From positions 1,612,001-1,676,000 of the forward strand of contig OX337232.1 of assembly GCA_946965045.2 (NCBI GenBank): DNA of 64,000 bases, given 5' to 3'. This document shows, piece by piece, positions 3,404 through 35,714 of the stretch. A program made the translations under genes and the position numbers. The notes beneath the pieces were generated by a model. It worked only from the letters and a program-made list of their open reading frames with translations. It was not told where the DNA came from and did not search any database. The stretch's first letter is position 1, and every line of letters begins with the position of its first letter. Source of the DNA: Epithemia pelagica (lineage: Eukaryota > Protista > Bacillariophyta).

Positions 3404-3445
3404 CATCCGGGCTACGAGCTGGTTCACGTTGCGGAGTGCATGAGT
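3404..3445 (+). repeat. Left TIR of the ITm-like element
   Basis: GGCTACGAGCTGGTTCACGTTGCGGAGTGCATGAGT is the reverse complement of 10355-10390 with one mismatch. Confidence 0.85.
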
Positions 3446-3612
3446 ATATTAGTGTACAAGACTGTACCCGAAAAAAACCAGTACACAAAACTCCACAGTG
3501 GATAATCCGCAGCAACCATGACAATGGGATGGATCGATGTTTGGACAAATACGATGCCATTCCTGGCTACAAACACAACAAGTACTATTGCTAATCGACT
3601 AAGTAGGTTCTA

Positions 3613-4122
3613 TTACGCATCTGCTGTAAAGAACAGGCTCTGGGTAGGGTATTTTGTCGTCATGTAGGCAAGAGCAGTCTTGAGCTCTTCCATGTGGAAG
3701 AGGCTCATGTAGAGGGTGACGACCATTGGGTCCATGCTGCTCTTCGTATCGATCGTGCACCGTGTGTAGAATTGAATGCGGCCCTTCTTCTTGCTGGAGT
3801 CCGTGGGTGAGAGAACTTCCTTCATCACTGTCTTGACAATGAACCCAACTGGCAGCACAAGCAGCGGGTCGGCAAACTCGGACCGCGCTTCCCTCTTGTA
3901 AAATGCCAACCGAAGATAGTCTGTGCTTGTCTCCCGTTGGAGGAGAACATGCCCACGGTCGACAACATTCCGTCCATTTTGTTCTGCGCCGTTGTCGACA
4001 ATGTCTCCAACGAGAACATTGACCCTGTCCGCGTAAAAGCTCGTCCGAAAGTTACATCGACTTCGATCGTCTTCAGAGCCAAACTTGTCCTTGTTGAAAA
4101 AGAACTCGACCTCGTCCTCCAT
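3613..4122 (-). CDS. Uncharacterised cargo protein 'X1' (169 aa), homolog of 32346-32882
   Basis: Shares VNVxVxD...VVDRGxVLLQR, [LI]PVGxIxK and DTKxxMxPMV[VI]TxxMS blocks with X2. Confidence 0.75.
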   Translation of the reverse strand: MEDEVEFFFNKDKFGSEDDRSRCNFRTSFYADRVNVLVGDIVDNGAEQNGRNVVDRGHVLLQRETSTDYLRLAFYKREARSEFADPLLVLPVGFIVKTVMKEVLSPTDSSKKKGRIQFYTRCTIDTKSSMDPMVVTLYMSLFHMEELKTALAYMTTKYPTQSLFFTADA

Positions 4123-4431
4123 GCCGTTGTTGATTGTTGGTGTTGGTAGCATCGTACTCCGAACTCCGCACGTTAGGTTGATTGTTCGATCGATTCAAAG
4201 CAGTGGGTTGTTTCGTGTTTGCATGTTTCGTTTCCGGATGCATCCAAAATGTGGGAGCCACACGGGTTGGTCGGATCTTTACGCGCACCTCTTTCCGTTC
4301 AGCTATCCGTTGATCTAAGTAGGTTGTTTGAGTTTGGTCTTGAGATCGCGAGCAGGTACATTCCACATCCCATTACAAGACACAGCACGATGCTCTCAGT
4401 TGTGTGTTCGTCTCACAAAAAACAAAACAAG

Positions 4432-5357
4432 ATGAGCAACAACAGCCATCGTCGCTACCCAAGTCGCACCCGCACCAAAACACCAAGCTTCCTGGATGAC
4501 ATCCAGGAAGATACTGTTCCTCCACCAGGGAAGACGCCAGGGAAGACACCAGCGAAGACACCAGCGAAGACACCGGGCAAGAAGCTCCCTCCGAAGAAGA
4601 GCTCCACGAAGAAGAACGCAAACAAGAAGCGTCGAACAAAGAAGACGAGTCCGGAGCTCCCCCCACCCCAGTCTCCAGATTTCGTCATTTCCAAGGTGGT
4701 TGAAGGGGAGACTCCAAGAGGAGCAAACGAGGACATAGTGGTATTGATGCCGGTGGCCATCGACGACAAGGCGCAGAGGCTCAAGGATGCATTGAACAAA
4801 GCAACGCAGTGGCATCTCATCCTTGGTGATGAGAATGGAGCCACGACCCTGGTGCTTGGTCGAAACCACAAATATCATTCGGGCAAAGTCTCGATTGCCG
4901 AGATTGTGGAAACGCTTAAGCAGTCTGAGCGTAGCCACAAGCCCAGAAACAATGAAACAATCAACGAAAATGGTAAGTTGATTGTGCCTTTGTAATTGAT
5001 TGGAACGATCGTAGTACTCACCTCATTTTGTTTTCAGGACAAGTGGGTGGAATGCTGATGGAGACTCGCACTCCATTGAAGAAGGAGGAGTCCATTGGTG
5101 AGGCGGAGACTGTCATGAAATCCAATGTGGTGGATTGGCAGTACTTGACGCCTGGTGAGAAGCACGCCCAAAAGAGACGTGAGGCCGAGAGGGCTGTGCA
5201 TTTCATGGCTGACAGTTGTGCAAGCCCGAGTCTCTTTCGTGAGGCTGCTTCAACGACGTCGGATGATGACGCCACGTATGACTCTCACGTTGATGATGGA
5301 TTTGAAGATACGCAGGAGGAAAATATGTTTAGTCAGGAGGACTACTACAAGTATTAG
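4432..5357 (+). CDS. Uncharacterised cargo protein 'Y1': basic KTP-repeat N-terminus, acidic C-terminus; intron 4973-5037
   Basis: ATG 4432; GTAAGT...TTTCAG intron joins the 4219 and 5028 ORF frames in phase; repeated CDK-site-like TPGK/TPAK. Confidence 0.65.
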
Positions 5358-5421
5358 TTACGTAAAATAAACCATTCTAAATACTGAATAATTGTTGTCC
5401 TTTACTTTCATCATCGTGGCC

Positions 5422-6507
5422 TTAGTCGCTTTCTTCTTCTTCATCGTCATCTTCGTCTTCGTCGTGCGAATCCTGATCTTTCTCGTTGTTGTTGCCTTCG
5501 TCATCTTCCTCGTCATCCGAATCCGAATCTGAATCCTCATCTTCATCTCCTTCATCATCCGACTTCTCGGATTCCTCGTCGTCGTTGCCATCTGAAGATT
5601 CATCTTGCTCATCCTGGCTGCCAGTCCTCATGCCCGACGCCAGATTGTAGCACCAGAACAACTCTTGATTTTTTTTAATGTTGCGTTTGGCTGTAGCCTT
5701 GAGCTTTCCGTCGACCTGGACGTTGTAGCATTTGTCGTCCGGGTCAACAGGTTGGTTGTCGTGATACTTGGCATAGTTTGGATCGTTTGCAAAGTGCAAA
5801 CCCATCCAAAGGTCTGCCGCGGATGGATCAACGAAGACAGAAGGCCTTGTACGCAGTCGGACAGCGTAAGCAGAAGGCGGACGAGACTTGTCAAGGACCT
5901 TACCACCATAGAATCCCAGCATTTCGCCTTTTTTGTAGGGCTTTGCTGCAAAAAGCCCGAGACGAGCGTTGTCCAAGGTTGATCGCTTGATGACAAACAA
6001 GTCTTCGTCGACGTACCGAACAATGCACTCGTACTTTTGTGAATTGTCGTTTAGGTCCACCATCATTGTCCCTTCGACAAGTAGATTGTTCTTGTGTTTC
6101 TTGTTGATTCCCGACCCTTTCTTTTTGTTGTATTTACTTGGAGCATAGTGTTTGATTGCTGTGCCAACAGGTTTGCCCTTGGAGCCGTGGGCTTTCCGGA
6201 CCTGTGCACCTTCGATGCTCACGATGCCCTTGATGTGGGAGGAAATGAACCGATATAATTCGGTTCTTTCCTCCAAAGTACCTGATCCATACAGGCCTTC
6301 AAGCTTGGCCATGAGATTCTCCGCCTTCACTGCCCGTGGCGTTCTCGTTGTTGCAATCTTCTTCCTCGCTCGTTGTTTCTGATTGAGCTCATCCATTTTG
6401 TATTTTCGATTTTGCTGCATGCGACGAGGCGGCTTTGCTGCTCTTGTTCGTGTTCTTGCGGAACTCGCCTGTTGCTTTGTAGTGGAACGTGTCTGTCGCT
6501 TTCCCAT
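5422..6507 (-). CDS. SET-domain lysine methyltransferase-like protein with basic N-terminus and Asp/Glu-rich tail (transposon cargo, SET-1)
   Basis: SET motifs RLGLFAAKPYKKGE, HFANDP (RFINH-equivalent), AKRNIKKNQELFWCY (ELxxDY-equivalent); no Cys-rich pre/post-SET visible. Confidence 0.85.
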   Translation of the reverse strand: MGKRQTRSTTKQQASSARTRTRAAKPPRRMQQNRKYKMDELNQKQRARKKIATTRTPRAVKAENLMAKLEGLYGSGTLEERTELYRFISSHIKGIVSIEGAQVRKAHGSKGKPVGTAIKHYAPSKYNKKKGSGINKKHKNNLLVEGTMMVDLNDNSQKYECIVRYVDEDLFVIKRSTLDNARLGLFAAKPYKKGEMLGFYGGKVLDKSRPPSAYAVRLRTRPSVFVDPSAADLWMGLHFANDPNYAKYHDNQPVDPDDKCYNVQVDGKLKATAKRNIKKNQELFWCYNLASGMRTGSQDEQDESSDGNDDEESEKSDDEGDEDEDSDSDSDDEEDDEGNNNEKDQDSHDEDEDDDEEEESD

Positions 6508-6857
6508 GGCTGTTGCAGGCTGCTGCACTTTGTCGCTGTCGAAAAATTCTGACTGCTGCACTTTTATGAACTTGGGCTGCTGCACTTTTTGGAGAAGGCG
6601 CAGAAACGCCAACCCCTTTGAGCTTCCGAATGAGAGTGAAAACCGCATTGACAGTCATCAGACTGTCGTTTGTACACTGTGGACCAGTCTATTTTTGGTG
6701 TCACCAATGAACTTCGCAGCACTTGAGACGTACAAAAAAGATTCTCTCATAAAATTTGCTTCTGGAAAAAGTGAAACAGAGTCTCGTGCATGACAAGCCT
6801 ACAAGTATGAAGATGAAGAGGAGTTCTATGGTACGTAAATGTGTTACAATATGAATT

Positions 6858-9800
6858 TCAGCGTTCTGCTTCTTGTGCCTCCTTCCAGACTTGCTGGATG
6901 AACGAGTGCTCTTGATCGAGCGTGCACCGGTGAGTCTTCATACTCACATTCACATACTTCTCGATTTCGACAAACAGGATGTCATCTGTTGCACTTTGAT
7001 TCCTGCTGTCAAACAACAAATAGGTAAGCATGTACCGCCTTGCTTTCGCTGAGAACCTGCGAACGGTTCTCAGCGAAACTTTCCCCATACTGTCTCTCAC
7101 CACTTGCATGAACTTCGTCTTGTTGCCTTTCTTGTTTCTTGTCAAGCGTCGGAAGTATCGCTTCCCAAGACCCCATGCGTACTCGATCCCTTCACCCGCC
7201 AGTTCGCAGTGGTATTTTGGTGTGACGAGGATTTCAAGGTTGCGAGAATATCGCTGCGAGAGATCAGCCGCCAGTTGTTCGAGGGCTGATCTCTCATTCT
7301 TGAAGTCCTCGCACGATCCCATCAGGTAAGTCAAGGAATACTTCTTGTATTCCTCCATCTTGTCCTCACGGACCTGTCCTGAACCATCCAACCATGTCTT
7401 ACTCATGTCCTTGCGGTATTCCTGGAGCTTGGTGGTGTCAATGAAACCACGCTCGCCCAGAACTTGGAAGAGACCCTTTGGTTGCCCGAGCCAGCCCTGC
7501 TCCATGACAACTCGGTCTACCTCGGTTGGTAGCTGCCTTGCTGTCGAAATTGCCTGGAGCTGGTCAAGGGATTTGGAATGGTAGGCTTGAAGTGCCCTGT
7601 CGCCATGTTGAGCTCCTTGTTGAATGTCATGGCGAATGAGCTCACCAATCAATTCTTTCTTGGACAGCTTGTGTTTCTTTGTTTGATTGGTTGGGTGGTC
7701 GAACTTCATTCGTTGTCGTTGCTCCTCAGTGAGAGGAACACCCTTATAAGCAAATGGGCCAGGGTCCGCATCCGTGTATACCATGGATTGCTTCGACCCT
7801 GGCTGAAGACGATGAGGGTGTGGATATGGACCGATGCACTCAACAATTGTCTCATGCATTTTGGGTACCACTCCACCCCAATCCTTGTTCATGGTCTTCT
7901 CGTTGAGCCCATCCTTCTGTTTTCGTCCATGACCGCTACTGTTGTCAAAGAGAAAAGCGAAATCAAAGGATGGATAGAGGACCATCAAACAATCAACCAA
8001 GTCCTCAAATTGGAGGGCCATGTGATCGTAGTTCCACCAGCCATCATTGTTGGATCCATAGTCAAAATACGTGCAGAACGCACTGGCATCCGTGATCTGC
8101 CGGATCCGCTTGCTGCTGCCACCAAGTACTTGACTGGCAGAGTCCTCGGCCAAGTACGTCTGCGCTCGACGAGATTGATTGATTGCCTCTAGCTTCTCGG
8201 GGGTGAGCAGGACAACTTCGCCTGAGTTGTCTGAATAGAACCCCCATGCGCGACTCACGAATGCACTAAGCATTAAACCGTGCCCGTCGTCTTTGGGCAA
8301 AAGAACTCCACGCCCTTTGTGGTCCCCCCAACTCTTCTTCGAGAAGGACCATTGCTTGAAAATGGCTTCATCTTGGCCAACAAGCACAACAGGACGACGC
8401 TCAGAAGGGAAACGATGTGACAAATTTCCTCCCAGCAGCTTGTTTTCATCTCTAATGTATGATGAAAACACATCAGGAAAACAATCTACATGGTATTCTC
8501 GCATTGTTTGGTTCGTCGAAGGGTCTCGAAACTCGAAAGCCCAAACATCCTTCATGAGCTTTTCGGAGACACCCTCAATCTCCCCGTTTTCTAGTTTGAT
8601 TGCTTGGTCGGATGGAATCTGAATCCATCGATGCGCAAGCTTTTCCAACTCGAAGTATTTCGAGATGAACTGCTTCCGGGCTTGAACATTGTCGGCGTCC
8701 TCGTGACGGTCCGTGTAGTATGTCTTCTTTGTTTCAGAGAATCGAAACCCAGCATATGTGAGAATCTTCCATGCCGCACCGACTGAAACACTGGGGAGAT
8801 TCACTTTTTGACGGAACTCGTCCAACGTGAGCGGCTCTGTGGATGGCTCCCCATCTTCGGTGTCCGTCTGTTGCTCTTTTTTATATATCAATGGGATCAA
8901 ACTGTCTCGAATGTACATGGCTGCCATCTCGCAGGAGAGGGTCTCCAGATGTTGGCTCGCCCACTTCTGCAGCAATGGGAGTGCTTCTGGATATTGAGCC
9001 AGAAAGCATGGGCACGGCTTCTTCCCAATCTGGATGTACCAGTTTGGATGCGGGAACTTGCCGCTGACCCGGAATGCAACGTTGGCTCTTTGCACAGTCC
9101 GCCAATTCTGCAGACCGCTTTTTGAGATTCTACTCCGTTCGGTTGCATATTTGCAACACGAAGTCCACGTGGCACCATCCTCCATGGTGTGCAGGGCTCG
9201 CTCATACGCAAGCCTCAGCACCCGCATCCTCATAAGCATCTTTGGGACACAAGAGTTTGGCGGTGGCTCATCTTGGCCCTTGTTGACAAGAGTCAAAAAA
9301 CAATCAAACCGTTGTTCCGCCATTTCAAGTGACTCAATCCACCGTTCCAGCTTCTTTCTCGTTGTCTCCTCATTCACTCTCGGACCAAAGATTTTGCTCA
9401 CAACGGGCCGGTCGAAGAAATCTACGGCAGAAGAGTCACTGGAGGCATTGGAATGCTCGTTGTTGTTGTTGTTTCCATTGTCGTTTCCTGTGCCTGTGGT
9501 TGTTGTTGTTGTGGTGGTTTCCAGTGCCTCTTCCAAAATCTGCTCTGGGCTTGGTGGTGATGACGCTGCCGTTGTGGCAGTTTCATCATCCTTGATTGGT
9601 GTTGTGGGTTTCTTGCGTTTGTTCCTCCCTCCAATTCGAATCCGATTGTGGCTTTTGAATTTAAGCCACTCGTCAATAGTGTGGTTGAATTGAGGTGGTG
9701 GATCGGTCTGACGAGCCGAAACATAGTAGAATATTTGTTTCCCACCTCGACGTCGCACCTCGTGGCGGTAGATACCCTTGGGATTCCACTCTTGCGATAG

Positions 9801-10007
9801 GAAATGGAGTCGCCATTCACTACCTGAGCGCATTAAAGATCGATTCATCATTGTTGCGTCGGATAATTCCGGAATCCACTGCTTCAAGAAGACGGCAATC
9901 TCAGCGTCAATAATCCACCGGTTTGTCCAGAGGAAGCGTATTGGATGGCATCTGAAGCCAAATTCGTCGCATATGGTTGTGTATGGCCCTGTATATGATT
10001 GAACCAT
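6858..10007 (-). CDS. Large IS630/Tc1/mariner-like DDE transposase (~1049 aa, uninterrupted)
   Basis: Catalytic-like motifs VGQDEAIF, FLFDNSSGH, PKYHCELAGEGIEYAWG; long insert between second Asp and Glu; lies between TIRs. Confidence 0.8.
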   Translation of the reverse strand: MVQSYTGPYTTICDEFGFRCHPIRFLWTNRWIIDAEIAVFLKQWIPELSDATMMNRSLMRSGSEWRLHFLSQEWNPKGIYRHEVRRRGGKQIFYYVSARQTDPPPQFNHTIDEWLKFKSHNRIRIGGRNKRKKPTTPIKDDETATTAASSPPSPEQILEEALETTTTTTTTGTGNDNGNNNNNEHSNASSDSSAVDFFDRPVVSKIFGPRVNEETTRKKLERWIESLEMAEQRFDCFLTLVNKGQDEPPPNSCVPKMLMRMRVLRLAYERALHTMEDGATWTSCCKYATERSRISKSGLQNWRTVQRANVAFRVSGKFPHPNWYIQIGKKPCPCFLAQYPEALPLLQKWASQHLETLSCEMAAMYIRDSLIPLIYKKEQQTDTEDGEPSTEPLTLDEFRQKVNLPSVSVGAAWKILTYAGFRFSETKKTYYTDRHEDADNVQARKQFISKYFELEKLAHRWIQIPSDQAIKLENGEIEGVSEKLMKDVWAFEFRDPSTNQTMREYHVDCFPDVFSSYIRDENKLLGGNLSHRFPSERRPVVLVGQDEAIFKQWSFSKKSWGDHKGRGVLLPKDDGHGLMLSAFVSRAWGFYSDNSGEVVLLTPEKLEAINQSRRAQTYLAEDSASQVLGGSSKRIRQITDASAFCTYFDYGSNNDGWWNYDHMALQFEDLVDCLMVLYPSFDFAFLFDNSSGHGRKQKDGLNEKTMNKDWGGVVPKMHETIVECIGPYPHPHRLQPGSKQSMVYTDADPGPFAYKGVPLTEEQRQRMKFDHPTNQTKKHKLSKKELIGELIRHDIQQGAQHGDRALQAYHSKSLDQLQAISTARQLPTEVDRVVMEQGWLGQPKGLFQVLGERGFIDTTKLQEYRKDMSKTWLDGSGQVREDKMEEYKKYSLTYLMGSCEDFKNERSALEQLAADLSQRYSRNLEILVTPKYHCELAGEGIEYAWGLGKRYFRRLTRNKKGNKTKFMQVVRDSMGKVSLRTVRRFSAKARRYMLTYLLFDSRNQSATDDILFVEIEKYVNVSMKTHRCTLDQEHSFIQQVWKEAQEAER

Positions 10008-10105
10008 TTTGTCTGTTCGGGCACAGGCAGAGAGATGGAGGATGAGGGGACTGCCCACGATGTTCGACAGTAGCTACTTTCACTGCTCCTGGAGACTGAA
10101 CCACA

Positions 10106-10192
10106 GGTCGAAATGCGCGACACCCCTATGATTTTCTACTACTTTTATATCTATCCTATCGATTAGGTTGGGTGGTGTTTCGCATTTCGACC
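10106..10192. repeat. Hairpin with 19-bp arms (17/19 complementary) and AT-rich loop, upstream of the transposase
   Basis: GGTCGAAATGCGCGACACC (10106-10124) vs GGTGTTTCGCATTTCGACC (10174-10192). Confidence 0.7.
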
Positions 10193-10354
10193 GGCGAATG
10201 GCCATCGTCGCATGAAGCGGTCACTAGTCGTTATTGCATTTTGCATTTTTCAATATGTGCGTGACAAAATGTGAGGAACACGAAAACCGTAAGTGATCCG
10301 AAACGCTGGGGTACTGTGGGCTAAAGTGTAGTATACAATTTCCCACTATGAAAA

Positions 10355-10399
10355 ACTCATGCACTCCGCAACGTGAACCAGCTTGTAGCCTGCGACGTG
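10355..10399 (-). repeat. Right TIR of the ITm-like element
   Basis: Reverse complement of 3410-3445 (1 mismatch); ends ...CGTG followed by TA. Confidence 0.85.
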
Positions 10400-13277: not shown

Positions 13278-13682
13278 ATTCTTCCGTTTCAACAACAAAT
13301 ATCCCACCCAGAGAGGATCGAGGAGACTGGTCACTCTATCGGCCTGCTGTGTTCTATACCTTCTTTGGACCTAATGAGGAAATGGTGGAGCAATTTCTGC
13401 CTCCATTTAAGCGCACCCCGACAGCAAATGGTGCTTGAGGCTGCTAAACCAACTGCGAAACCTCACACCTTGGAGAAAGAGTCCCGTAGAGAATGCGCAT
13501 GCCGTGCTTGAAAATTGCGCTATGGATGAAGATTATTTATTGGTCCACAAGCCAACAAAAATCCACTTCTATACGATGCTCAGTACACGCACGGCGCTCG
13601 CCCTCGGATGGCGATGCCAACGACAATCGCAGTACTTTCCAGCTCCGGGTAACTTCCGCTATGGTAGACTACCTCTAGCTCT

Positions 13683-15327
13683 GGTGATACGGCCAGACCC
13701 TGCATTTTAGCGGCCAAATGACCATGGTGGTCTTTAACGATTACTAGCTCAATATAGCACCTCCATAGAAATGGGATGATAGAAATCATCTTCATACAAT
13801 GCTTTAGGTCCCCACCGGGCACTTTTTCCATATCTGCCATCGTCATCGAGTTCTCTCTCATCATTGTAGGGTCATTTTTTTTGCGATTTGGCCGCTAGAT
13901 TGCCCGTTGGCCGGTACATTCACCATGCGATTTCTCCACCAATACTTGACCAATTGCCATGAAATTAAAATAAGTTATCGACCTTAGTGTAAATGAGAAC
14001 AGTATTGACCCATATAGGCTATCCCCAAGCATAGGATGCAAACGAGCTTCCACACCATTGCGTCGATTTTTCGACGTGGCACGGACCACATGAGATTAGC
14101 CTACTCATTCGTCGAAGTCAGCTCCATGAATACGGCCGCTCCAGACGTCCTACTTAGTAGTCTTTTATGTTAGGCTCTACTTTAGCAATCTGAGGTATCA
14201 GATTGATCATCGGTGATATGGCCATTGAGAAAAGGCCATCCATCGATGGACGCTTCTTTTCGACGCATCACACAGAACAGGAGTTTTTGACCAAAGGATG
14301 ACGAGACCCGGCTCCATGAATATGGCCGCTCCAGACGTCCTACTTAGTAGTCTTTTATCTTCGGCTCTACTTTAGCGATCTGAGGTATCAGATTGATCAT
14401 CGGTGATATGGCCATTGAGAAAAGGCCATCCATCGATGGACGCTTCTTTTCGACGCATCACACACAACAGGAGCTTTTGACCAAAGGATGACGAGACCCG
14501 GCTCCGTGGATATGGCCGCTCCAGACGTCCTACTTAGTAGTCTTTTATGTTCGGCTCTACTTTAGCGATCTGAGGTATCAGATTGATCATCGGTGATATG
14601 GCCATTGAGAAAAGGCCATCCATCGATGGACGCTTCTTTTCGACGCATCACACACAACAGGAGCTTTCCTCCATGGATATGGCCGCTCCAGACGTCCTAC
14701 TTAGTAGGCTTTTATGTTCGGCTCTACTTTAGCGATCTGAGGTATCAGATCGATCATCGGTGGTATGGCCATTGAGAAAAGGCCATCCATCGATGGACGC
14801 TTCTTTTCGAAGCATCACACACAACACGAGTTTTTGACCAAAGGATGACGAGACCCGGCTCCATGGATATGGCCGCTCCAGACGTCCTACTTCTTTGACC
14901 GTTACTATAGAGACTAAGTTAGGCTATACAAGTTTCAGATCCGGCGTAGGGGCCATGGTCCTCATGGTCGAGGCGATCATCCATGGACGATTATTCGTCG
15001 TGCCACGGAGCACAAGGATTTTGGACCAATGGACGATGCCATGCCAATATTCGACAATGGTCCCTCTGGACATCCTACTTTTTGCCCGTTACTATAGAGA
15101 CTATGTTAGGTTACACAAGTCTCAGATCCGGCTTAGGGGCCATGGTCCTCATGATCGAGGCGATCATCCATGGACAATCATTCGTCGTGCCACGGAGCAC
15201 AAGGATTTTGGACCAATGGACGATGCCATGCCAATATTCGACAATGGTCCCTCCGGACGTCCTACTTTTTTGCCCGTTAGTATTGAGACTACATTAGGTT
15301 ATACAAGTTTCAGAGCCGGCGTAGGGG
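13683..15327 (+). repeat. Left inverted arm: ~450-bp unique terminus, type-A tandem units (190,190,167,190 bp), then type-B units (~187 bp), interrupted by copia
   Basis: CCAGACGTCC recurs at 14141, 14331, 14521, 14688, 14878; type-B motif CCGTTACTATAGAGAC and variants recur near 14900, 15087, 15273. Confidence 0.9.
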
Positions 15328-16110: not shown

Positions 16111-16124
16111 GATTAACAGTCTCA
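16111..16124 (+). promoter_or_regulatory. Putative primer-binding site complementary to the anticodon stem-loop of tRNA-Asn(GUU) (half-tRNA priming)
   Basis: GATTAACAGTCTCA directly after the LTR; reverse complement TGAGA-CTGTTAA-TC is a canonical anticodon arm. Confidence 0.65.
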
Positions 16125-16146
16125 AAGCTTATTTCCTTGTGGTTTC

Positions 16147-24460: not shown

Positions 24461-24553
24461 AGATTGAATCGATCTTAAAGCAGAAACGTTTTTAACTAAT
24501 GAAGCAAGTGTCTTGCCTTGTTTCTAACGTCAGCACTATATGTAGTTACTCAA

Positions 24554-25345: not shown

Positions 25346-25700
25346 TGACTCCCAAGCGTCAACTCTTCAAACACTATTCTATATAGATCAATAGTGTATA
25401 ATTCACTCCTTCTCTCCATAAATTTTCGAGCGCTAGTGCTTACTTGAGGGCGTCGTATCTTTCGGTCGCTCATCAGCATGATAGCCAGGCATAGCATGGG
25501 TAGTCGGAGGAGAGTTGGAGGGAATATGTCACACGTTCCCCAAATTTCCCCCAATCCACAGATGAATTTTATTGCAAGTCAACTGATCGAGATCGCAGAC
25601 ACAAGTGACGAGAGACGAGAGAGACAAGAAACCATGTCCGAGAGCTCATTCAACACAACAATGAACTAAAGTATTACATGCAGCTATAAACTAATAAGTC

Positions 25701-26936
25701 TCAATTGTTCAAATCGAGTCCACCGAGCACTTTCGTTGGTGAGGAGTGAGGGATGTTGTGACCGTGCTTGTAGAATTTTGCGAGACGATCATTCATCTTA
25801 TATTCGGTCGGTAATTCATAGTTGTTTCTGGGTGGGTATGTATGGACAGTCTCATCGCGTCCTTGGTACACGTAGAAATGGGCACGTGGATCACCTTGGG
25901 TACCATTCACGAAGCCTCCAGCGTGAACGGTATCGCCTCGCATAAGCAGCATCGTTCCATAAAGGATCTCAACCACCTCACCCAGCTGATGGAGTTTGGC
26001 AGTGTGGTTGTTACGATGCTGCCATATTTCCACGGCCATGCCGGCTTCCGTCAGGGGCATGAAGACAACAAACGGGACACGTTCTTTGAACGGTGCCTTT
26101 TTCTTTCCCACTCCCCGAGTTGTCACTCCTTTCGATCTCGGGCTCTCACCGGGCAAAAGGTCATACGAACTCGGCGTGACAACTTCCCACATGAAGTCCA
26201 GGTGCGGCTCTTGGACTTTTGGCTCTTCGGTCTTGATATAGGACAGGTGAATCTGGATTCCGTCCGCAAACGAGACGTCTGCTGCGTAGCCCATCTCCAC
26301 AAGGGCTTGAGCGAGAACTGTCTTGAACTTCGTCGTCATTGCAGCTAGCTCGTCCTTAGAGTAGGCGCTAAAGTCATGGCTCATCACAAAAGCTTCATTT
26401 TCCTGCATGCGCATTTGAATTTGCTTCGAGAAGTTTTGAACCCCTCGCATCCTCTTCGTGATCTTGTCCTTTCCGTGCCTGTCCGTTCCGAGACACCACG
26501 GTAGACGCAACATATCAAGCAGCTCCTTCGCAACCACCACAAAACGTCCTCGGTGGTCACCCTTGAGATCGACCAACAAATGGGCATGCTTCCGGTGCAG
26601 TTCCTTCACTTGCTGCTCTGTAGTCGCTTGTTTGACGACGGAATCTTCAATGCGCTCGAGTGACGGAGCTGCCGATCCTCCCGGACTGGAGAGATGATGG
26701 AGTACCGGGTGATGGGAAGGATGAATGGGCTGTGGTGGTACCTGCCCATATTCTCCATAAGGTGGCTGCCCGTAGGCCGGCGAGTAATGAGGCTGACTTT
26801 GCCCTGGGAAGTGCACCGACGCAAATGCGGACTGCTGATAGTGGGGAGGAGATTGGTACAGAGGAGGTTGGCGTGGAGGATGATAGTACGGTGGAGGCTG
26901 CTGTGGATGTTGGTACGGAGGAGATTGGCCGTAGGT
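25701..26936 (-). CDS. 2OG-Fe(II) dioxygenase-like (double-stranded beta-helix) frame with Pro/Gln/Tyr-rich leader; in frame with the upstream SET ORF across one TAA
   Basis: QEPHLDF (HxD), FVVFMPLT strand, LLMRGDTVHAGG (distal His), GDPRAHFY (2OG-binding Arg); frame is open from 26936, just after the stop. Confidence 0.75.
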   Translation of the reverse strand, partial: TYGQSPPYQHPQQPPPYYHPPRQPPLYQSPPHYQQSAFASVHFPGQSQPHYSPAYGQPPYGEYGQVPPQPIHPSHHPVLHHLSSPGGSAAPSLERIEDSVVKQATTEQQVKELHRKHAHLLVDLKGDHRGRFVVVAKELLDMLRLPWCLGTDRHGKDKITKRMRGVQNFSKQIQMRMQENEAFVMSHDFSAYSKDELAAMTTKFKTVLAQALVEMGYAADVSFADGIQIHLSYIKTEEPKVQEPHLDFMWEVVTPSSYDLLPGESPRSKGVTTRGVGKKKAPFKERVPFVVFMPLTEAGMAVEIWQHRNNHTAKLHQLGEVVEILYGTMLLMRGDTVHAGGFVNGTQGDPRAHFYVYQGRDETVHTYPPRNNYELPTEYKMNDRLAKFYKHGHNIPHSSPTKVLGGLDLNN

Positions 26937-28235
26937 TTAATGGTCGTGAGCAGGGACAAGACCACGGGCTGGAGGAGGGGAACCAAGAGGAACAGGGGCA
27001 GTCGCAGTGGCAGCAATGGCAGGAGTAGTGACCTGAGGAATCGGAAAAACAACAGGAGCATCATCCACCGGACCATGTTCAGAGAGCTGCACTGGAGAAT
27101 CCGCCTCACCAGAACAACGTGTATTTGGCTTCTTCTTGTTCTTCTTCTTTCCGGGCAAATCTTCGCTCTCTTCCCCACCAGTGGATCTACCACGCTTCTT
27201 TCCTGCGCCCTCGCAAGGGATGTAGGATGAAGCTTGCATTGCATTCTCCTGGGTGATGTTGTAGAACAAGAAACACTCTTTGCCCTCGTCGATGTCCCTG
27301 ATTGCGCGGACGAGAAGATTTTTTTCTACTTTAATGTTGTACATTTCATCTGCTTCGTTGGGGACTTCACCCTTGTCGTAGAGGTCGTAGTAGGGATCGT
27401 TGCTCAGGTGGAATCCCATGAAAAAATAGTTCTTGTTGTCAGGTTGAACGGTGCGTGGTTCATCGTCGGCTCCAAATTGAAGCGAGTACTCGCTCCGCGG
27501 GACAAGTTTTGTTGTTACATCCTGTCCTGCATAGACACCTATCACCTCTCCTTCTTTGTATTCCTGCGCTGCAAAAATACCAAATCCACCGTCTTTTCCG
27601 TCTTTGACTTTGACCTTCGACTTCTTCACAACAAAGAGAGGTGTTTTTCCCAGCATAATGTTGAACTCCGGGTCATGGTCGAGCGTGAAACTGACATTCG
27701 GGAAAACGTTCATTTTTTTCCCTCGGTGTTGCTTCAACGGAATCCCAATTCCCACAGATCTCGATGCATTTGTTCCGAGTTCGACACCGTACTCATCGAC
27801 CTCCTTCTTGATACCTGTCCCTGATTTCCGAATGGGAGCAGCTTTCACCAAAAATGTTACGCTAATCTTCTGCGAGACGAACTCTCCGTATGCGTTGAGA
27901 AGCACATCACTTTCGTGGATTGTAGAGGCCAGATGTGTGAGACCTTGGATGAAAGTGGTACGCGGATCTCGCGTAGAGCTCTTAATGCGCTTCACTGCTG
28001 CGACGGCGGTCCTGTAGGCCTCTTTACGTCGGGCAACGAGGCGCTGACTCACCGCCCGGTGCGTGACGCTGTAGGCTTTGTCACTATCATCCTTCAGATT
28101 GCCTCGACGACTCTCCGCAATCCTATTTTCGGTCACCATAGCAAGATCTGCGTCCGAAAGAAACCGATGATGACCCGCTGTTGGTGTCGCTTCCTTCGTT
28201 GTTGTCATCTCCTCTTCGGGCGCTTCGTCTGCTGT

Positions 28236-28316
<81 letters not shown>

Positions 28317-28382
28317 TGGCGGTGCGGCTGCCTGTGAGACAGTGTCTACAGCATCCAAAAGAGTATCAAACCTCTTTGGCAT
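26937..28382 (-). CDS. SET-domain lysine methyltransferase-like protein (transposon cargo, SET-2) with Ala/Thr triplet tract near the N-terminus
   Basis: GGFGIFAAQEYKEGEVIGVYAG, FMGFHLSNDPYY, YNIKV, AIRDIDEGKECFLFY; same subfamily blocks as SET-1. Confidence 0.85.
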
Positions 28383-28780
28383 CGTTTATCGTTTTATTCT
28401 CGTGTTCAACAAAAGGTTTCCTTCGTCGGTCGAACACTTGAAACGCGACAAAACACCACGATCCACAGTTGACTTGAACTAAAATTGAGTAACGCTTTTG
28501 AGAATCCAAACTTACTTATGCCCTGTGCGCATGGCAAAGCCACATTTTTGGTGCGTTGACTGCTGCGACTGCATTAGGCACATTTTTCGGTATGTTGACT
28601 GATGCGACTGCGTCACAAACTGAGAGGTTTTCCCTCCAACATCGATCCACAGTTCATTCAACAACCACGTTTCCAAATCGGAAATTTGCTTTCGACCCAC
28701 GATGGAAATTGTCTTCCTTTACCTTTTACATTGCTCAGAATAAAGACGCGAGACAAAGCGGTAGAGAAAGATAATCAAAG

Positions 28781-29375
28781 ATGCCCACGACGCAGAAGGC
28801 GAAAGATCAGAAAGCACCTTTAGGAGTTGGAACGAAATGCTACATACGACAAGGAGACAGGGCATGTATTATTATTGAGGCCCTTGATTTGCAAAAGTGG
28901 CGTGTTGCTGTAGTAGACAGGCAAGGCAATCCTACTGACCAGATAGAAGAAGCCACGTCCAAGAGACTACGGAAAATAAAGAAAGATGAGCGCTTTCCTG
29001 GGGAACCCGTACCGGACCCAGATGAAACAGCCGTAAGCACAACCGCAACCGAGACCGTGGCCGTAACCGCAACCGCAACCGTAACCGCAGCCGCAGCCGC
29101 AACAACGACCACAACCACAACCACAACCGCAGCCGCAGCCGCAACCGAGACCGCAACCGCAGCCGCAGCCGCAGCCGCAGCCGCAGCCGCAACAACAACC
29201 ACAACCACAACCGCAGCCGCAGCCGCAGCCGCAACCGAGACCGCAACTTCAACCGCAGCCGCAACAACAACAACAACAACAACAACCACAACCGCAACTG
29301 CAGCTGCAACCGAGACCGTGGCCGCAACTGCAACGGAGACCGTGGCCGTAACCGCAACCGCAACCGAGGCCGCGG

Positions 29376-29433
<58 letters not shown>

Positions 29434-32283
29434 AACAACGACAACGACAACGACAGGAGCTGAGCCACCCGTCACGGAAGCGAGTACAATTCACCCACCG
29501 ATTTTGACAGATGTGGACCAAGACAAAGACGATCCGAACATCATAGCGCAAGCTGCGGAAGCGGAGAATGTAGACCACGGGCCCCCAACCAATGAAGGCA
29601 ATGCAAATGATGAAGAGGAAGGTGGTGCTGCTGTTATTGCCGAGGCAGCGGCCGCTGCCGCCGCCGATGAGGATGACTCGTCGGTTGCAGCAGCGGATAA
29701 TGAAGCCGCTGAAGATCCAACGGAGCTTGATGCAGATCTTGAGAATGAGGGGGCTGAGCAAGCCAATGCAATGGCTCTCGGGGCCCTTGTTGAACAAGAC
29801 GACGACATTCACCGTCAGAGATTTGCGGCCTATAGGGCTCGAAAACAGCATCTCATTACGTCCAACTGGAAAGTGACCATGAAACCTCCAAAGAAGAAAG
29901 GGATTGAGGTCGGGGATAGAGTTTCCGAGAGGGGTGCGAATCCTCGATACGGGATAGTCATCAGCAGAAGAAAGGATCCAAATGCTACTCAAGGAAACCT
30001 GTGGACGGTGCATTTTGATGGAGATGAGGAAGCGACCATAGATATCAAGCATACCCAACTCCGAAAGCCCGACGACAACCGAACTTTCGTATGGAAGATT
30101 GTACGGGATTCGTCTCCCGATGAGTCAGTCACCGAATACCAAGAGGCTGTTGGAATTGTAGGCTTCGACTTTTTGGGGAAAATGGCTCCGTACGAAATTA
30201 GCGCAGATAATATTGAGTACAAGTACCCCTTTCTTGACTTGTTGATTCATTTCTGGCCTGGTAAGTCAGCACTCTTTTTCTTGAATGCTCTTTAGTCCAT
30301 GTCTCATTTTTCTATCGATTTGTTCATCCATTACAGGAAATTGGCGTGATCAGCTAAAAAACCTTAATTTATTCTTAGAGCGAACAAACCCTTCTCGCCA
30401 TAAAAAGAAGAAGATTCGACCCGTGACAGAGAAAGAATGGTGGGTTGTATGGGGAGTGATCCTCTCTGCCAATCCCCTCAAAAAGGGAGGAAAGGCTCTT
30501 TTCCAGAAGCCTGAACAACGACGGCTGTCGTCCACAGTGAATCTCGGTACAAAAGGCGAAAACTTTATTGCTGAGAGTCGGTTCATGGATATCAAAGAGC
30601 ATCTCAGGCATGCCTTTGCGGGACGGGACTCCACTGACCCCTGGAATGAAATCCGTCCATTGATTGACGGCTTTAATCAGAATCGCCGAGGCGTAGTCGC
30701 AGCATCCGCGACACAAGTGCTTGATGAATGCATGAGTGCATTTCAACCACGGACAACCAAGTCATCATTGTTGCCACATCTGTCTTACGTGGCACGGAAG
30801 CCCAAACCTCTTGGAACTGAATTCAAGGTGAGTAAATGGAGAAGAGGATATTTCCAGAAGCTTTGTTACTCACTGTGTGATATTCCCTTGACAGGTGACT
30901 GCAGACACTGCGACTGGGTGTCTGACCTTTCTTGAAATCCAAGAAGGCAGACTCCCAATGCGTGCGAAGAAGTATGTTGATGGTTTGGGAGTAACTGGAG
31001 CGACAACTCTGCGACTGATTGAGAGCTCGCAATACTCAGGGCAGCAATTAAATGGTCGCTATGAATCCCAACTCGATTCCAAGCGATGCCTCTATATCGG
31101 AGACTCTTGGTTTGGAAGTGTCAAGATGGCCGAGAACCTCAAGTGTACGTGGCACGAGCAGAGGGAGGACGACGATGATGATGGTCTCGTGTATTACGTG
31201 GATAAGGAGAAAGGGGTCAACCCAGACGCCCACGAAGTGATTGGTGCCGTCAAGACCGCCCACTCTTGGTTCCCCAAGGACGAACTTGAGAAGGAGATGA
31301 AGGACTTCCCATCCGGCGCCTATCTCGTCATGGAGTGCACGGCACCTGAGACGGGAGTAAAGCTTGTTGGAATCGGATACAAGTACAACTCACGGAAGGT
31401 CCTCCTCTTTGTTATGACTAAAAATGCGGGGAAAACGATCCCGGGATCTCCGTACATTGCTCGATTTACCGATGAGTTCGGCAATGTCAAAAGCCGGAGA
31501 GTCGAACGGCCTGACTGTATTTCCCAGTACTTCAAGTGTGCGAATAAAATTGACCGTCACAATCATCTGCGTCAGGGCATCCTCCGTCTCGAGCAGTACT
31601 GGAGAACAGTTGATCCATGGTTTCGCATTGCGACAACGGTGTTCGGAATGACAGTGTCTGATTGTTACCTTGGCATGCGTTTTCATCTGCAAGCGGAACC
31701 ATTCTCGAGCTTTACGATCGAAGACTTCGCGGATATGCTCGCAAACGACCTTTTGAGAAACAACTTTTCCGATGATCGCAGCAATCGAAAGGCGGGCATG
31801 TTACCAAACATCCCAGTGACACGTCGTCCGCCGCTTTCGGTACACACTGTTGGGCCCTCAGCTTCTGTGCCATCGAGCGTGCACAATGTGGGGGGGAATG
31901 CATCTCCTAACTCCATGGTGTCTGATCTGACCAATGATTCACTGGTTTGTCATGAGGTTGTGGAACAGGCAGAAAAGTCTTTATCTGACCAGCGGCCCGT
32001 GAAGCGCAAATGTGTTATTTGTAAAAATGACACGAGATCAATGTGCGGGCATCCAACATGCTGCAATATGATCAAGATGTTTTGTGGGGAAGCCAAAGTT
32101 GGAGTTCCTTTGTGTAAGCCCTCCATGGGTATTCGTCGCGGGGAAGTGCGGACTTGCCTTGAAGAGCACATGTGCCGTGTTATTGCGGCAAGCCAAAAGG
32201 AAAACCACAACTCATTTGTCCCGAACATGAGAACCGGGTCGACTCTACATTGTTTCATGTCTTTGCATATTAATAAATTATGA
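28781..32283 (+). CDS. piggyBac-like (PGBD) DDD transposase, join(28781-30260,30337-30827,30895-32283), ~1119 aa, with two Tudor/SH3-barrel-like N-terminal modules and a Cys-rich C-terminus
   Basis: VLDECMSAF...RKPKPLGTEFK, YIGDSWFGSV, NKIDRHNHLRQ; C-terminal CxxC...CxxxxC...LC...CxxxH; GTAAGT..ACAG and GTGAGT..GACAG introns keep the frame. Confidence 0.88.
29037..29456. repeat. Compound triplet/hexamer microsatellite encoding a Thr/Ala linker in the transposase
   Basis: (GCAGCC)n, (ACAACC)n and (ACAACG)n runs, all in frame. Confidence 0.9.
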
Positions 32284-32345
32284 TTAGGAGCTTAGTAACA
32301 TCGAAATCTTAGTACTCAAGTGTAATATGCTATGGGATCCTACGA

Positions 32346-32882
32346 CTAATAGGTTCGAACGCTCTCCTGATGGGGCCACGTCTCTGTCGCTTTATCAAAA
32401 AGTGACATGAACGTAGCCATCCCAACAACACTCATCGGCACAGTAATGACCATGGGCCCCATGGCCATCTTGGTATCCAAAGAATGAGCCGTTTCAATCG
32501 TGAGCTCTCCTTTGACAAGGGAACCGCTCTTGGAACGGAACTTCTTGGAGCGTATTTTCTTGTAGATCGATCCGACTGGGATGACGACATCAGGCATCGA
32601 ATCATCCATCTTCTCCCGACCAAATGCGCTAATTGATAGCATCCCACCGTTGCTCCCGTACTTGGAACGCTGTAAAAGAACGACGCCTCGATCCACCACA
32701 AGCGTCCCCTTTCCACCTTTCCCATCACGAGCGACGTCTTGGACGTACACATTCACGCCCGCTTCGCCATAGATCGTTGCTCGGCTACCATGGAGCTGAA
32801 TCTCGCTCCCGTCATCTTGCATCACGTTGAACCCATTTGCAAGGAGAAGTCTATTGCGCGATTTGTGCTCGTATTCCGACAT
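32346..32882 (-). CDS. Uncharacterised cargo protein 'X2' (178 aa), homolog of 3613-4122
   Basis: VNVYVQD...VVDRGVVLLQR, IPVGSIYK, DTKMAMGPMVITVPMS align to X1. Confidence 0.75.
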   Translation of the reverse strand: MSEYEHKSRNRLLLANGFNVMQDDGSEIQLHGSRATIYGEAGVNVYVQDVARDGKGGKGTLVVDRGVVLLQRSKYGSNGGMLSISAFGREKMDDSMPDVVIPVGSIYKKIRSKKFRSKSGSLVKGELTIETAHSLDTKMAMGPMVITVPMSVVGMATFMSLFDKATETWPHQESVRTY

Positions 32883-33371
32883 CGTCCTTCGTCCATCGTA
32901 AATGTAGAAAATATGAAGGGTGAGACGCGATGAGTCGCACAGTGCAAAACAAGTTTGAGATAGGCACTTACCTCTTTTCCTACTCCTTATTGGATTGTCA
33001 AATGAAAAGTCTTTAGTTAGAGGAGCTTGCCACTCAGATGGCCGATCAATTCTCTCCTCTCTGCACGAAAGGACGAACACGTCCGTGGTATCCAGTCGGC
33101 ATGCATAAAAATGCAGTTGTGGTTTGGGGGAAACGGTGGGGACTTTCTACAATTGCCACTCGGGATTAATTAAAACAACGTGACGATATGCTTAAGAAAA
33201 GTTCCATCCGTTGAAGCGCGTGCCCTCCACAATTTACAGCGCGACAAGATTTTTATGTGAGACGACTGGTCGATCATCAATCAAATAACAAGAGCAACCT
33301 TCCCATAAAGGCATAAAGGACAGCAAGGAAAAGAAAACAGACGACAAAAGCAAGGACAAAGAAAGAAAGAC

Positions 33372-33884
33372 ATGTCGCTCTACATCGACAAGCGCCGTGT
33401 TAGTGCGAGGCTCCAAGGCCGTACGACCAAAAGTGTTGTCACAACTGGTGCATCCAAACCCACTATGCGCCCAACCCAAAAAGGTGCCCACAAGAACAAC
33501 AAGAACAACAACAACGACGACAATGCGAAAGCCGTAGATACGGAGAAGAAGAAGGAGATCTTGCTCGGGTGTGATGCAATTGGTGTGGAAATGAGTCGAT
33601 CATCAATCCTCAAGATGAGAGACGATTTCCTGGAACATGGATCGAACGGAGGGAGCAACACTCCAGTGCGCCATTCCAAGATCAAGTTTGCTGATGAGAT
33701 CAGCCCCATCCCTGAAGACAATCAGAAGCCTTCGTCCCGTTTATCCACCCTAAGCACCGCCTCCATACGTAGCCTCAAGAGTGCATCTTCCGGTGGAACT
33801 GCTGTAGACAGCGATCTTTCGTTCGACTTTGCCGAGACTCAACAAGATAACGGTGACTTCCTCTTCAAAACCTATGGAAAATAA
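33372..33884 (+). CDS. Uncharacterised low-complexity cargo ORF 'Y2' (170 aa), divergent from X2
   Basis: ATG-initiated; basic N-terminus, Ser-rich/acidic C-terminus; head-to-head with X2 as Y1 is with X1. Confidence 0.5.
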   Translation: MSLYIDKRRVSARLQGRTTKSVVTTGASKPTMRPTQKGAHKNNKNNNNDDNAKAVDTEKKKEILLGCDAIGVEMSRSSILKMRDDFLEHGSNGGSNTPVRHSKIKFADEISPIPEDNQKPSSRLSTLSTASIRSLKSASSGGTAVDSDLSFDFAETQQDNGDFLFKTYGK

Positions 33885-33963
33885 ATGATAGTTAAGCCTG
33901 TCAAGTATAGCAATGACGATAAATATGGAAACATAAGCTTTAGAGTTGGATCATAGCGCGGCT

Positions 33964-35714
33964 TCGTCCATTGGTCCAAAATCCTTGTGCTCCGTGGCAC
34001 GACGAATGATTGTCCATGGATGATCGCCTCGATCATGAGGACCATGGCCCCTAAGCCGGATCTGAGACTTGTGTAACCTAACTTAGTCTCTATAGTAACG
34101 GGCAAAAAAGTAGGACGTCCAGAGGGACCATTGTCGAATATTGGCATGGCATCGTCCATTGGTCCAAAATCCTTGTGCTCGGTGGCACGACGAATGATTG
34201 TCCATGGATGATTGCCTCGATCATGAGGACCATGGCCCCTACGCCGGATCTGAGACTTGTATGACCTAACTTAGTCTCTATAGTAACGGGCAAAAAGTAG
34301 GACGTCCGGAGGGACCATTGTCGAATGTTGGCATGGCATCGTCCATTGGTCCAAAATCCTTGTGCTTGGTGGCACAACGAATGATTGTCCATGGATGATC
34401 GCCTCGATCATGGGGACCATGGCCCCTACGCCGGATCTGAGACTTGTATAACCTAACTTAGTCTCTATAGTAACGGGCAAAAAAGTAGGACGTCTGGAGC
34501 GGCCATATCCATGGAGCCGGGTCTCGTCATCCTTTGGTCGAAAACTCGTGTTGTGTGTGATGCGTCGATAAGAAGCGTCCATCGATGGATGGCCTTTTCT
34601 CAATGGCCATATCACCGATGATCGATCTGATACCTCAGATCGCTAAAGTAGAGCCGAACATAAAAGCCTACTAAGTAGGACGTCTGGAGCGGCCATATCC
34701 ATGGAGCCGGGTCTCGTCATCCTTTGGTCGAAAGCTCCTGTTGTGTGTGATGCGTCGAAAAGAAGCGTCCATCGATGGATGGCTTTTTCTCAATGGCCAT
34801 ATCACCGATGATTGATCTGATACCTCAGATCGCTAAAGTAGAGCCTAACATAAAAGACTACCAAGTAGGACGTCTGGAGCGGCCATATCCATGGAGCCGG
34901 GTCTCGTCATCCTTTGGTCGAAAGCTCCTGTTGTGTGTGATGCGTCGAAAAGAAGCGTCCATCGATGGATGGCCTTTTCTCAATGGCCATATCACCGATG
35001 ATTGATCTGATACCTCAGATTGCTAAAGTAGAGCCTAACATAAAAGACTACTAAGTAGGACGTCTGGAGCGGCCATATCCATGGAGCCGGGTCTCGTCAT
35101 CCTTTGGTCGAAAACTCGTGTTCTGTGTGATGCGTCGAAAAGAAGCGTCCATTGATGGATGGCCTTTTCTCAATGGCCATATCACCGATGATCGATCTGA
35201 TACCTCAGATCGCTAAAGTAGAGCCTAACATAAAGGACTACTAAGTAGGACGTCTGGAGCGGCCGTATTCATGGAGCTGACTTCGACGAATGAGTAGGCT
35301 AATCTCATGTGGTCCGTGCCACGTCGAAAAATCGACGCAATGGTGTGGAAGCTCGTTTGCATCCTATGCTTGGGGATAGCCTATATGGGTCAATACTGTT
35401 CTCATTTACACTAAGGTCGATAACTTATTTTAATTTCATGGCAATTGGTCAAGTATTGGTGGAGAAATTGCATGGTGAATGTACCGGCCAACGGGCAATC
35501 TAGCGGCCAAATCGCAAAAAAAATGACCCTACAATGATGAGAGAGAACTCGATGACGATGGCAGATATGGAAAAAGTGCCCGGTGGGGACCTAAAGTATT
35601 GTATGAAGATGATTTCTATCATCCCATTTCTATGGAGGTGTATATTGAGCTAGTAATCGTTAAAGACCACCATGGTCATTTGGCCGCTAAAATGCAGGGT
35701 CTGGCCGTATCACC
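33964..35714 (-). repeat. Right inverted arm: type-B units, four 190-bp type-A units, unique terminus
   Basis: Reverse complement of the left arm; AGTAGGACGTCTGGAGCGG recurs with a 190-bp period from ~34485 to ~35245. Confidence 0.9.

Follow-up and report, generated by a model that had tools for sequence, protein, structure and literature searches.

The 64-kb stretch of the genome of the diatom Epithemia pelagica analysed here (contig OX337232.1, positions 1,612,001 to 1,676,000; hereafter the window) holds two autonomous-type DNA transposons that belong to unrelated superfamilies. One of these, element A, is a very divergent Tc1/mariner-like transposon, and the other, element B, is piggyBac-like. 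Each element encodes, in addition to its transposase, a SET-domain protein (SET1 and SET2, respectively) and a small protein X (X1 and X2), the gene of which is arranged head-to-head with that of a low-complexity (LC) protein (LC1 and LC2). Element B also has an open reading frame (ORF) for a probable 2-oxoglutarate (2OG)-Fe(II) oxygenase domain (DIOX). Both elements and both gene pairs are present where a first-pass annotation of this DNA had placed them, and no additional X or SET copies were found elsewhere in the window. The features are listed in Table 1.

Table 1. Features of elements A and B, in window coordinates (aa, amino acids; AF2, AlphaFold2; LTR, long terminal repeat)
Feature	Position	Strand	Basis or remark
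Element A, Tc1/mariner-like DNA transposon with four genes	3413..10387	-	Inverted repeat and end sequences
X1, 179-aa protein X with predicted PH-like (Ran-binding-domain/EVH1-type) fold	3613-4152	-	AF2 model, Foldseek
LC1, basic low-complexity protein with KTPxK repeats	4219-4995 (ORF)	+	Head-to-head with X1
SET1, 408-aa SET-domain protein with acidic tail	5422-6648	-	Pfam SET
TPase1, 1066-aa DDE transposase	6858-10058	-	Putative triad D563, D705, E959
Element B, piggyBac-like, with nested Copia	13675..35728	+	Inverted repeats, tandem arrays
Nested Copia LTR retrotransposon, outside the cargo	15324..23224	+	LTRs 15324-15623 and 22925-23224
DIOX, probable 2OG-Fe(II) oxygenase domain, 371-aa ORF	25701-26816	-	In frame with SET2
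SET2, 481-aa SET-domain ORF terminating at TAA 26937-39	26937-28382	-	Pfam SET
piggyBac-like transposase, three overlapping ORFs (28781-30295, 30285-30935, 30895-32283)	28781..32283	+	PF13843 on middle ORF
X2, protein X of element B, convergent with the transposase	32346-33080 (ORF)	-	BLASTP to X1
LC2, 170-aa low-complexity protein	33372-33884	+	Head-to-head with X2

Element A runs from 3415 to 10385 between two TA dinucleotides (3413-14 and 10386-87). An inverted-repeat search shows that it is flanked by 57-nt inverted ends, and its terminal ~30-36 nt are inverted and begin with C[G/A]AGCTGGTTCACG. Other genomic copies of the element depart from the window sequence exactly at 3413, as seen in loose ends from public DNA runs. 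The three public runs retrieved were DNA-like contig sets and gave no informative joints. A sister element is found at L018, one of 18 loci (L001-L018) retrieved through X or SET homologues from two diatom assemblies in ENA and from Epithemia clementina. Its DNA is 85% identical to that of element A, it holds the same four genes, intact in both elements, and its ends are likewise flanked by TA, so that TA directly followed by C[A/G]AGCTGG marks the ends of both. The probable start of LC1 lies at 4432, which yields a protein of 187 aa (4432..4995, + strand).

In its motifs, TPase1 resembles a Tc1/mariner-like (ITm-like) DDE transposase. It has more than 68 homologues, one of them from Fragilaria crotonensis, and the putative triad residues D563 (GQDEAIF), D705 (FDxSSGH, which reads FDNSSGH in the window copy) and E959 (HCELAGEGIEYxW) are invariant in 25 sequences. 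On inspection, the contexts of these motifs fit the published ITm pattern xDExxF ... DNxxxH ... PxLNPIExxW. In addition, the neighbours of TPase1 in language-model features carry DDE_3, and TA precedes all 15 ends examined (two each from the window element and L018, one from L003 and ten from a 9.7-kb family described below). The gap between D705 and E959 amounts to 253 residues and falls outside the ITm spacing of 34 to about 82. Furthermore, TPase1 and 24 homologues give no Pfam match to known ITm transposases, and no relative of TPase1 with a solved structure was found. In view of this spacing and of the missing profile and structure matches, TPase1 is called ITm-like here and not a demonstrated member. 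KDZ/Zisupton was considered as an assignment and given up for the ITm-like one, since TA flanks the ends and the motifs stand in an ITm-like context. Of the 25 TPase1 homologues, 7 (P0030, P0038 and P0076 among them) carry a SAP DNA-binding domain (Pfam PF02037), and the window copy is without it.

Element B has inverted ends of ~2 kb; the arms, of 916 nt (97%) and 659 nt (95%), are made up of 187- and 190-bp tandem arrays. The element probably ends at CTAG on either side (13675-78 and 35725-28), and its right end, CTAGTGCCT, matches the ends of the piggyBac elements at L014 and L015. The middle one of its three transposase ORFs matches the piggyBac profile PF13843 (33.1 bits against a cut-off of 22.4, 5e-8), and all three are collinear with the transposase genes of L014-L016. 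The transposases of L006 and L007 match the piggyBac profile at up to 1.7e-49. A change of frame is seen at the same protein position of the piggyBac transposase in three elements that are 43-52% identical (window, L014 and L016). As this position is common to three diverged elements, the frame change is more readily put down to a short intron or to programmed frameshifting than to decay. CTAG directly followed by TGCC is found at both ends of L014 (8542-14967) and L015 (8543-14957) and at the right end of element B, and none of these ends shows TTAA, which suggests CTAG as the putative target site of this diatom piggyBac lineage; an empty site was not observed. For X2, the most likely start is a conserved Met at 32882, resulting in a protein of 178 aa (32346..32882).

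SET1 and SET2 both score above the gathering cut-off of 22.4 bits for the Pfam SET profile (PF00856), SET1 with 25.7 bits (1.6e-5) and SET2 with 26.1 bits (1.2e-5). The two proteins align with one another (BLASTP E 2e-16, 34% identity over 110 aa), and the clades that they represent have another ~100 residues upstream of the SET domain in common. Both clades keep the motifs LGLFA/GFGIFA (GxG-like), YGG/YAG (YxG) and ELFWCYN/ECFLFYN, including the Tyr at the catalytic position. The divergent SET domain is a minimal one that lacks cysteine modules of the pre-SET or post-SET type; its neighbours in feature comparisons are small SET proteins from protists, bacteria and giant viruses.

SET2 and DIOX share a frame and are separated by a single TAA at 26937-39. 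An intact SET::oxygenase ORF of 967-986 aa is found in five loci of the 9.7-kb type (L008-L013), with Pfam SET scores of 29.7 bits in L008 and 26.7 bits in L011. SET2 is 41% identical to the SET half of these intact fusions and DIOX 39-42% identical to their C-terminal half. The iron triad and basic residue expected of a 2OG-Fe(II) enzyme are conserved between the window and L008/L011 in the motifs PH[IL]DF, VHAGG and PRAHF, which in DIOX read PHxDF (residue 204), VHAGG (297) and PRAHF (310). Language-model features place DIOX at 0.93 to 2OG-Fe(II)/PhyH/HalD clusters, and a DIOX profile retrieves only weak FtmOx1 matches (E ~0.7) from solved structures. A host 2OG gene beside L018 was considered as a relative of DIOX and proved unrelated (E 1.2).

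X1 and X2 are homologous (BLASTP E 1e-19, 33% identity over 152 aa). The AF2 model of X (pLDDT 73.5) predicts a PH-like fold, a seven-stranded sandwich with a C-terminal helix. In three structure searches (Foldseek E down to 4e-6), the top places go to the Ran-binding domains of RanBP1 and RanBP2, and that of NUP50 is also among the best matches. The superpositions cover nearly the whole domain at Z-scores of 12-14: the model fits Ran-binding domains over ~118 residues with a Z of 13.7 and a root-mean-square deviation of 2.6-3.0 Å, followed by EVH1 domains with a Z of 12.9. Sequence identity to these fold matches is 5-9%, and an X profile run against solved structures retrieved no Ran-binding domain. 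Given such low identity and the missing profile match, the ligand of X cannot be read from the fold; at most, the predicted fold suggests a protein-protein adaptor. When 1.84 billion representatives were searched with a profile, only 41 X clusters were returned, including one false positive (P0108, a 5168-aa low-complexity match to a fly serine-rich protein). Members occur in Epithemia and in one MMETSP transcriptome record, X is multi-copy per assembly, and one cluster consists of 12 near-identical members on many contigs. Two metagenome scans for the genomic contexts of distant X homologues returned nothing. A ballast-like partner protein is reported for some piggyBac families (PMC9587614); the idea of X as a P2X7-ballast-like partner of this kind gained no support, as X and LC have no Pfam match and X has a PH-like fold.

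The head-to-head arrangement of X and LC is kept in every X-bearing family, five in number. LC1 has a conserved C-terminal QWxLxLGDxNG domain, and the LC type of element A (LC-A) shares a small QWxLxxGDxxG domain with its counterpart in the 9.7-kb family (hhalign 91.5%). Homologues of LC2 stand beside X in L014 and L016 and are characterised by an N-terminal MSxxIxxRRxSxR and a C-terminal VDSNLSFDF. Alignments show that the LC proteins are lysine-rich. Their N-termini carry short basic motifs (SRTRTKT, MSxxIxxRRxSxR) that are loosely similar to the histone H3 tail (window 4432-4500 and 33372-33420, L014, L016 and L018). This resemblance may be due to chance in K/R-rich sequence, or may hint at LC as a substrate or mimic.

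Most of what the first-pass annotation had read at the locus is thus borne out: a SET protein stands beside the transposase in both elements, protein X is homologous across them, and the transposases are unrelated, one a PF13843 piggyBac enzyme and the other a TA-flanked DDE enzyme with Tc1/mariner-like motifs, with no cross-matches between TPase1-type and piggyBac transposases. The long inverted ends ascribed to element B stood, and the exact limits of the two elements had to be refined, to 3415-10385 and ~13675-35728. For the low-complexity ORFs, the position head-to-head with X was correct, and homology of LC1 and LC2 is undetectable (hhalign probability 3%): they occupy the same position and belong to different families.

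In 15 of the 18 loci, an identifiable transposase ORF adjoins X or SET. Nine to ten of these transposases are of the TPase1 family, two of them truncated (L001, L004, L008-L013 and L018), one is of the Harbinger type (L017), and the rest are piggyBac transposases of two lineages (L006, L007 and L014-L016). L005 has only a fragmented piggyBac gene, L002 only a piggyBac remnant, and L003, an end-truncated copy, lacks a transposase. The carriers differ in the accessory genes that they combine. Elements of the A type (window, L018, L004 and L001) are ITm-like and have a SET1-clade gene, no oxygenase, LC-A and X of the X1 clade. Those of the 9.7-kb type (L008-L013) are also ITm-like and have SET of the SET2 clade fused to the oxygenase (967-986 aa), an LC homologous to LC-A and an X that is sister to a piggyBac-linked group. 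Element B combines its piggyBac transposase with a SET2-clade gene and the fused oxygenase, broken by one TAA, an LC of a second type (LC-B) and X of the X2 clade. The piggyBac elements L014-L016 have LC-B and X2-clade X, and neither SET nor oxygenase. In L005-L007, the second piggyBac lineage, X is X1-related and there is no oxygenase; SET1-clade genes are present in L006 and L007, where the LC domain is as in the 9.7-kb type, and none was detected in L005. Lastly, the Epithemia locus L017 has a SET1-clade gene beside a Harbinger transposase and no oxygenase, and neither LC nor X was found there.

Several of these families exist in near-identical copies. Five 9.73-kb copies (L008, L009 and L011-L013) lie in unrelated flanks, three of them being 99.9% identical, and their similarity begins and ends at TA directly followed by CAAGCTGAGTTCAG (ends TA then CAAGCTG). 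L014 and L015 are 6.4-kb piggyBac elements with 240-bp inverted ends that are 99.2% identical. Judged from these copies, some families are recently mobile.

The ratio of nonsynonymous to synonymous substitution (dN/dS, NG86 method) between element A and L018 is 0.14 for the transposase, 0.23 for SET1, 0.12 for X1 and 0.53 for LC1, and a comparison of X1 with L003 gives 0.14-0.15. Young copies within one family show few substitutions and a dN/dS of 0.5-0.9, as is expected from decay after insertion, and values for deep pairs are unusable because synonymous sites are saturated. On these ratios, the cargo is under purifying selection. Since the cargo genes lie within the inverted ends, accompany the element to new sites as it is copied and are under such selection, they are to be regarded as parts of the transposons and not as neighbouring host genes.

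The histories of X and SET are not those of a single transposase lineage. In the X tree, the ITm or piggyBac label requires at least two changes, forced by well-supported branches: the X1-related clade (99/99), the group of 9.7-kb-family X with piggyBac-linked X (100/98) and the piggyBac X2 clade (98/92), which includes the X of the piggyBac elements L014 and L016. The SET tree consists of two clades at 100/100, one with ITm, piggyBac and Harbinger carriers and the other with ITm and piggyBac carriers, and it also requires at least two switches of transposase type. According to both trees, X and SET have therefore passed from one transposase superfamily to another at least twice. Furthermore, the pairing of X clade and SET clade varies by family, indicating that X and SET were reassorted against each other, and a pool of accessory genes is a more fitting description of the cargo than a fixed cassette. 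Of the module shuffled between superfamilies that had initially been proposed, the exchange is thus upheld by the X and SET trees, and the single fixed kit is given up, with SET missing from L014-L016 and the clades reassorted. The cargo itself turned out as that proposal had it, homologous, diverged, multi-copy and transposase-linked in 15 of 18 loci. The outcomes named beforehand as fatal to it were a dN/dS near 1, for which 0.12-0.23 was obtained for X, SET and transposase between sister elements, and single-copy unlinked host genes or a non-significant X1-X2 alignment, neither of which was found.

A few further features of the window and its relatives deserve mention. The nested Copia sits in the 187-bp array at the inner edge of the left arm of element B. 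Its LTR pair is 99% identical, its 1895-aa gag-pol ORF (17247-22934, with RVT_2 and rve domains) is uninterrupted, and its insertion into element B looks recent. Sequence related to the ORF at 16147-16926 is also present in L013, next to another Copia. A (CTT)73 microsatellite (24518-25348) located between the nested Copia and the oxygenase ORF gives rise to long poly-Glu/poly-Phe ORFs on opposite strands, which are probably non-coding. Just past the right end of element B, at 35737-36379, inverted repeats reveal fragments resembling its terminal repeat, which may be what is left of another, related element. A Harbinger-type ORF at 42198-43196 (+) is similar to the L017 transposase (phmmer 2e-57), and its surroundings in the window yielded neither a SET nor an X gene. 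At L017 itself (9608-11882, Epithemia clementina), the SET1-clade gene lies ~130 bp from a convergent Harbinger (DDE_Tnp_4) transposase.

A literature search found no published account of such diatom elements. The idea is not new in kind: both the presence of SET genes in HarbingerS and MuDR elements of Phytophthora and the shuffling of TET/JBP genes among DNA transposons of fungi have been published (PMC12730594). The Phytophthora elements, described or cited in that work, resemble the diatom ones in having a SET accessory gene in stramenopile DNA transposons of more than one superfamily, and L017, with its SET gene beside a Harbinger transposase, is likely the diatom counterpart of HarbingerS. 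The likeness is one of gene arrangement. The diatom carriers, in contrast, are giant Tc1/mariner-like and piggyBac elements, and the diatom SET travels with X and LC and is fused to a 2OG oxygenase in one lineage. In fungi, TET/JBP dioxygenase genes are carried by, and transferred between, 11 DNA-transposon lineages (PMC12730594). There too unrelated superfamilies have a plausible epigenetic enzyme in common, the phylogeny of which does not follow that of the transposases, whereas the diatom enzymes are SET and a non-TET 2OG oxygenase (no Tet_JBP Pfam match), with X and LC as further partners. Plavaka, a CACTA-type element of the red alga Bostrychia, carries PAG2, a DNA methylase with SET, PAG3, a 2OG oxygenase, and PAG1, a protein of unknown nature (10.1101/2025.02.11.637652). 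It is thus also an algal DNA transposon with SET, a 2OG oxygenase and an uncharacterised protein near tandem repeat arrays, but its transposase belongs to another superfamily and its SET is fused to a DNA methylase, whereas that of the diatoms is fused to the oxygenase. An element of the Sola1 group in Ectocarpus carries a ParB-DNA methyltransferase gene (PMC12477816). In Arabidopsis, anti-silencing encoded by a transposon has been shown experimentally for VANC of the VANDAL (MuDR) elements (PMC5735166, PMC10398659). The likeness of VANC to the diatom cargo, which is known from sequence, is conceptual only, with no relationship in sequence or fold.

What the cargo does for its carriers has to be read from these data jointly. 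The reading that we favour, and consider reasonably probable, is that SET and X are a transposon-owned, exchanged cargo that would act for the benefit of the element. Diatom transposons are silenced through DNA methylation and repressive histone marks. The cargo proteins would act on chromatin or on a chromatin-associated substrate: SET could methylate a lysine, the oxygenase, where present, could make an oxidative modification, X might serve as a protein-protein adaptor, and the basic LC might be a tether to DNA or chromatin. As a net effect, silencing by the host would be countered, or the transposition machinery would be expressed more strongly or reach the nucleus more easily. A chromatin-directed function of this kind for the cargo proteins, as predicted from their sequences, is a tentative proposition that we would sooner doubt than accept. 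Still less probable, albeit worth stating, is its most elaborate form, in which a transposon-encoded complex of X, LC and SET, the last alone or fused to the 2OG oxygenase, targets its own element. LC would sit on the DNA or chromatin of the element, X would recruit the enzyme via an acidic or proline-rich tail, and local rewriting of lysine methylation would block heterochromatin; the whole would be a portable anti-silencing system traded among at least three superfamilies.

A number of observations weigh against a chromatin-directed cargo. The canonical NH cofactor motif of SET reads ND in 9 of 9 sequences, and the best solved relatives, EZH2, PRDM proteins, LegAS4 and MLL, are found at E 4e-6 or weaker. 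In view of the ND change and of their divergence, these SET methyltransferase-type proteins could be a weak enzyme or a pseudoenzyme. DIOX has no Pfam match and a low-quality AF2 model (pLDDT 32), and it is taken for a probable 2OG-Fe(II) oxygenase from its motifs and language-model features. Likewise, none of 9 X proteins matches a Pfam family, Ran_BP1 (RanBD1, PF00638) included. The piggyBac elements L014-L016 carry no SET, which shows that SET is dispensable for some carriers. Element B itself is damaged by the stop codon in the fusion, by the nested Copia and by an altered left tip, and gives the impression of a copy in decay. The roles in chromatin modification, anti-silencing or the steering of insertion that the first-pass annotation suggested are inferred.

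The constancy of the X-LC pair in every X-bearing family, set beside the missing SET of L014-L016, also agrees with a different role, in which X-LC would serve the mechanics of transposition, either in nuclear import or export of the transposase or in transpososome assembly on subterminal repeats, with SET as an optional addition. The best fold matches of X are the Ran-binding domains of RanBP1, RanBP2 and NUP50, and the subterminal 187- and 190-bp arrays of element B are possible protein-binding sites. PIF/Harbinger elements have a Myb-like second protein, to which X-LC would be likened. However, X has no sequence match to Ran_BP1, and EVH1 and other PH-like domains fit its model nearly as well (Z 12.9), so that the fold leaves Ran unidentified as the ligand. 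To our knowledge, typical Tc1/mariner and piggyBac elements require no second protein, which also weighs against such a role. We regard it as doubtful, though as the main rival to be taken seriously.

The SET protein or the oxygenase could instead act on a non-histone target, such as the transposase, LC or a host silencing factor, or SET could be a dead binding module or decoy. The change from NH to ND in the cofactor motif would fit this, as would the lysine-rich LC proteins and the minimal SET domain, which in its features is like small SET proteins of the viral or bacterial-effector type. Conservation of the GxG-like, YxG and ELFxxY motifs in both clades, with the Tyr at the catalytic position, fits an active enzyme instead, and we consider the proposal improbable. 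Capture of host DNA by transposons is common, and the cargo might in principle be no more than host gene fragments taken up passively by Pack-type transduplication, without a function for the element. The premature stop in the window SET2::DIOX and the dN/dS of 0.5-0.9 in young 9.7-kb copies, with their few substitutions, can be counted in favour of this. Diverged sister elements, however, give a dN/dS of 0.12-0.23, and values this low make passive capture unlikely. Furthermore, ORFs are intact across families whose proteins differ in 40-60% of their sequence, and gene order and the head-to-head X-LC arrangement are conserved across five families. Passive capture is accordingly the least probable of these explanations, and very improbable in itself.

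Little is known about the responses of transposons to silencing in diatoms, and the families described here are young, intact and multi-copy and carry up to three conserved accessory genes. With elements that have or lack SET, that have or lack the oxygenase, and that hold one or the other of two different X/LC pairs, they constitute a natural experiment. Their practical interest is as active vectors, piggyBac-like and mariner-like, that are native to diatoms, the piggyBac-like ones with an apparent non-TTAA (CTAG) target. If the cargo does act on chromatin, the tools with which transposons counter silencing would extend from VANC and TET/JBP to histone-type enzymes in a major group of phytoplankton, and a new PH-like protein family would receive its first function.

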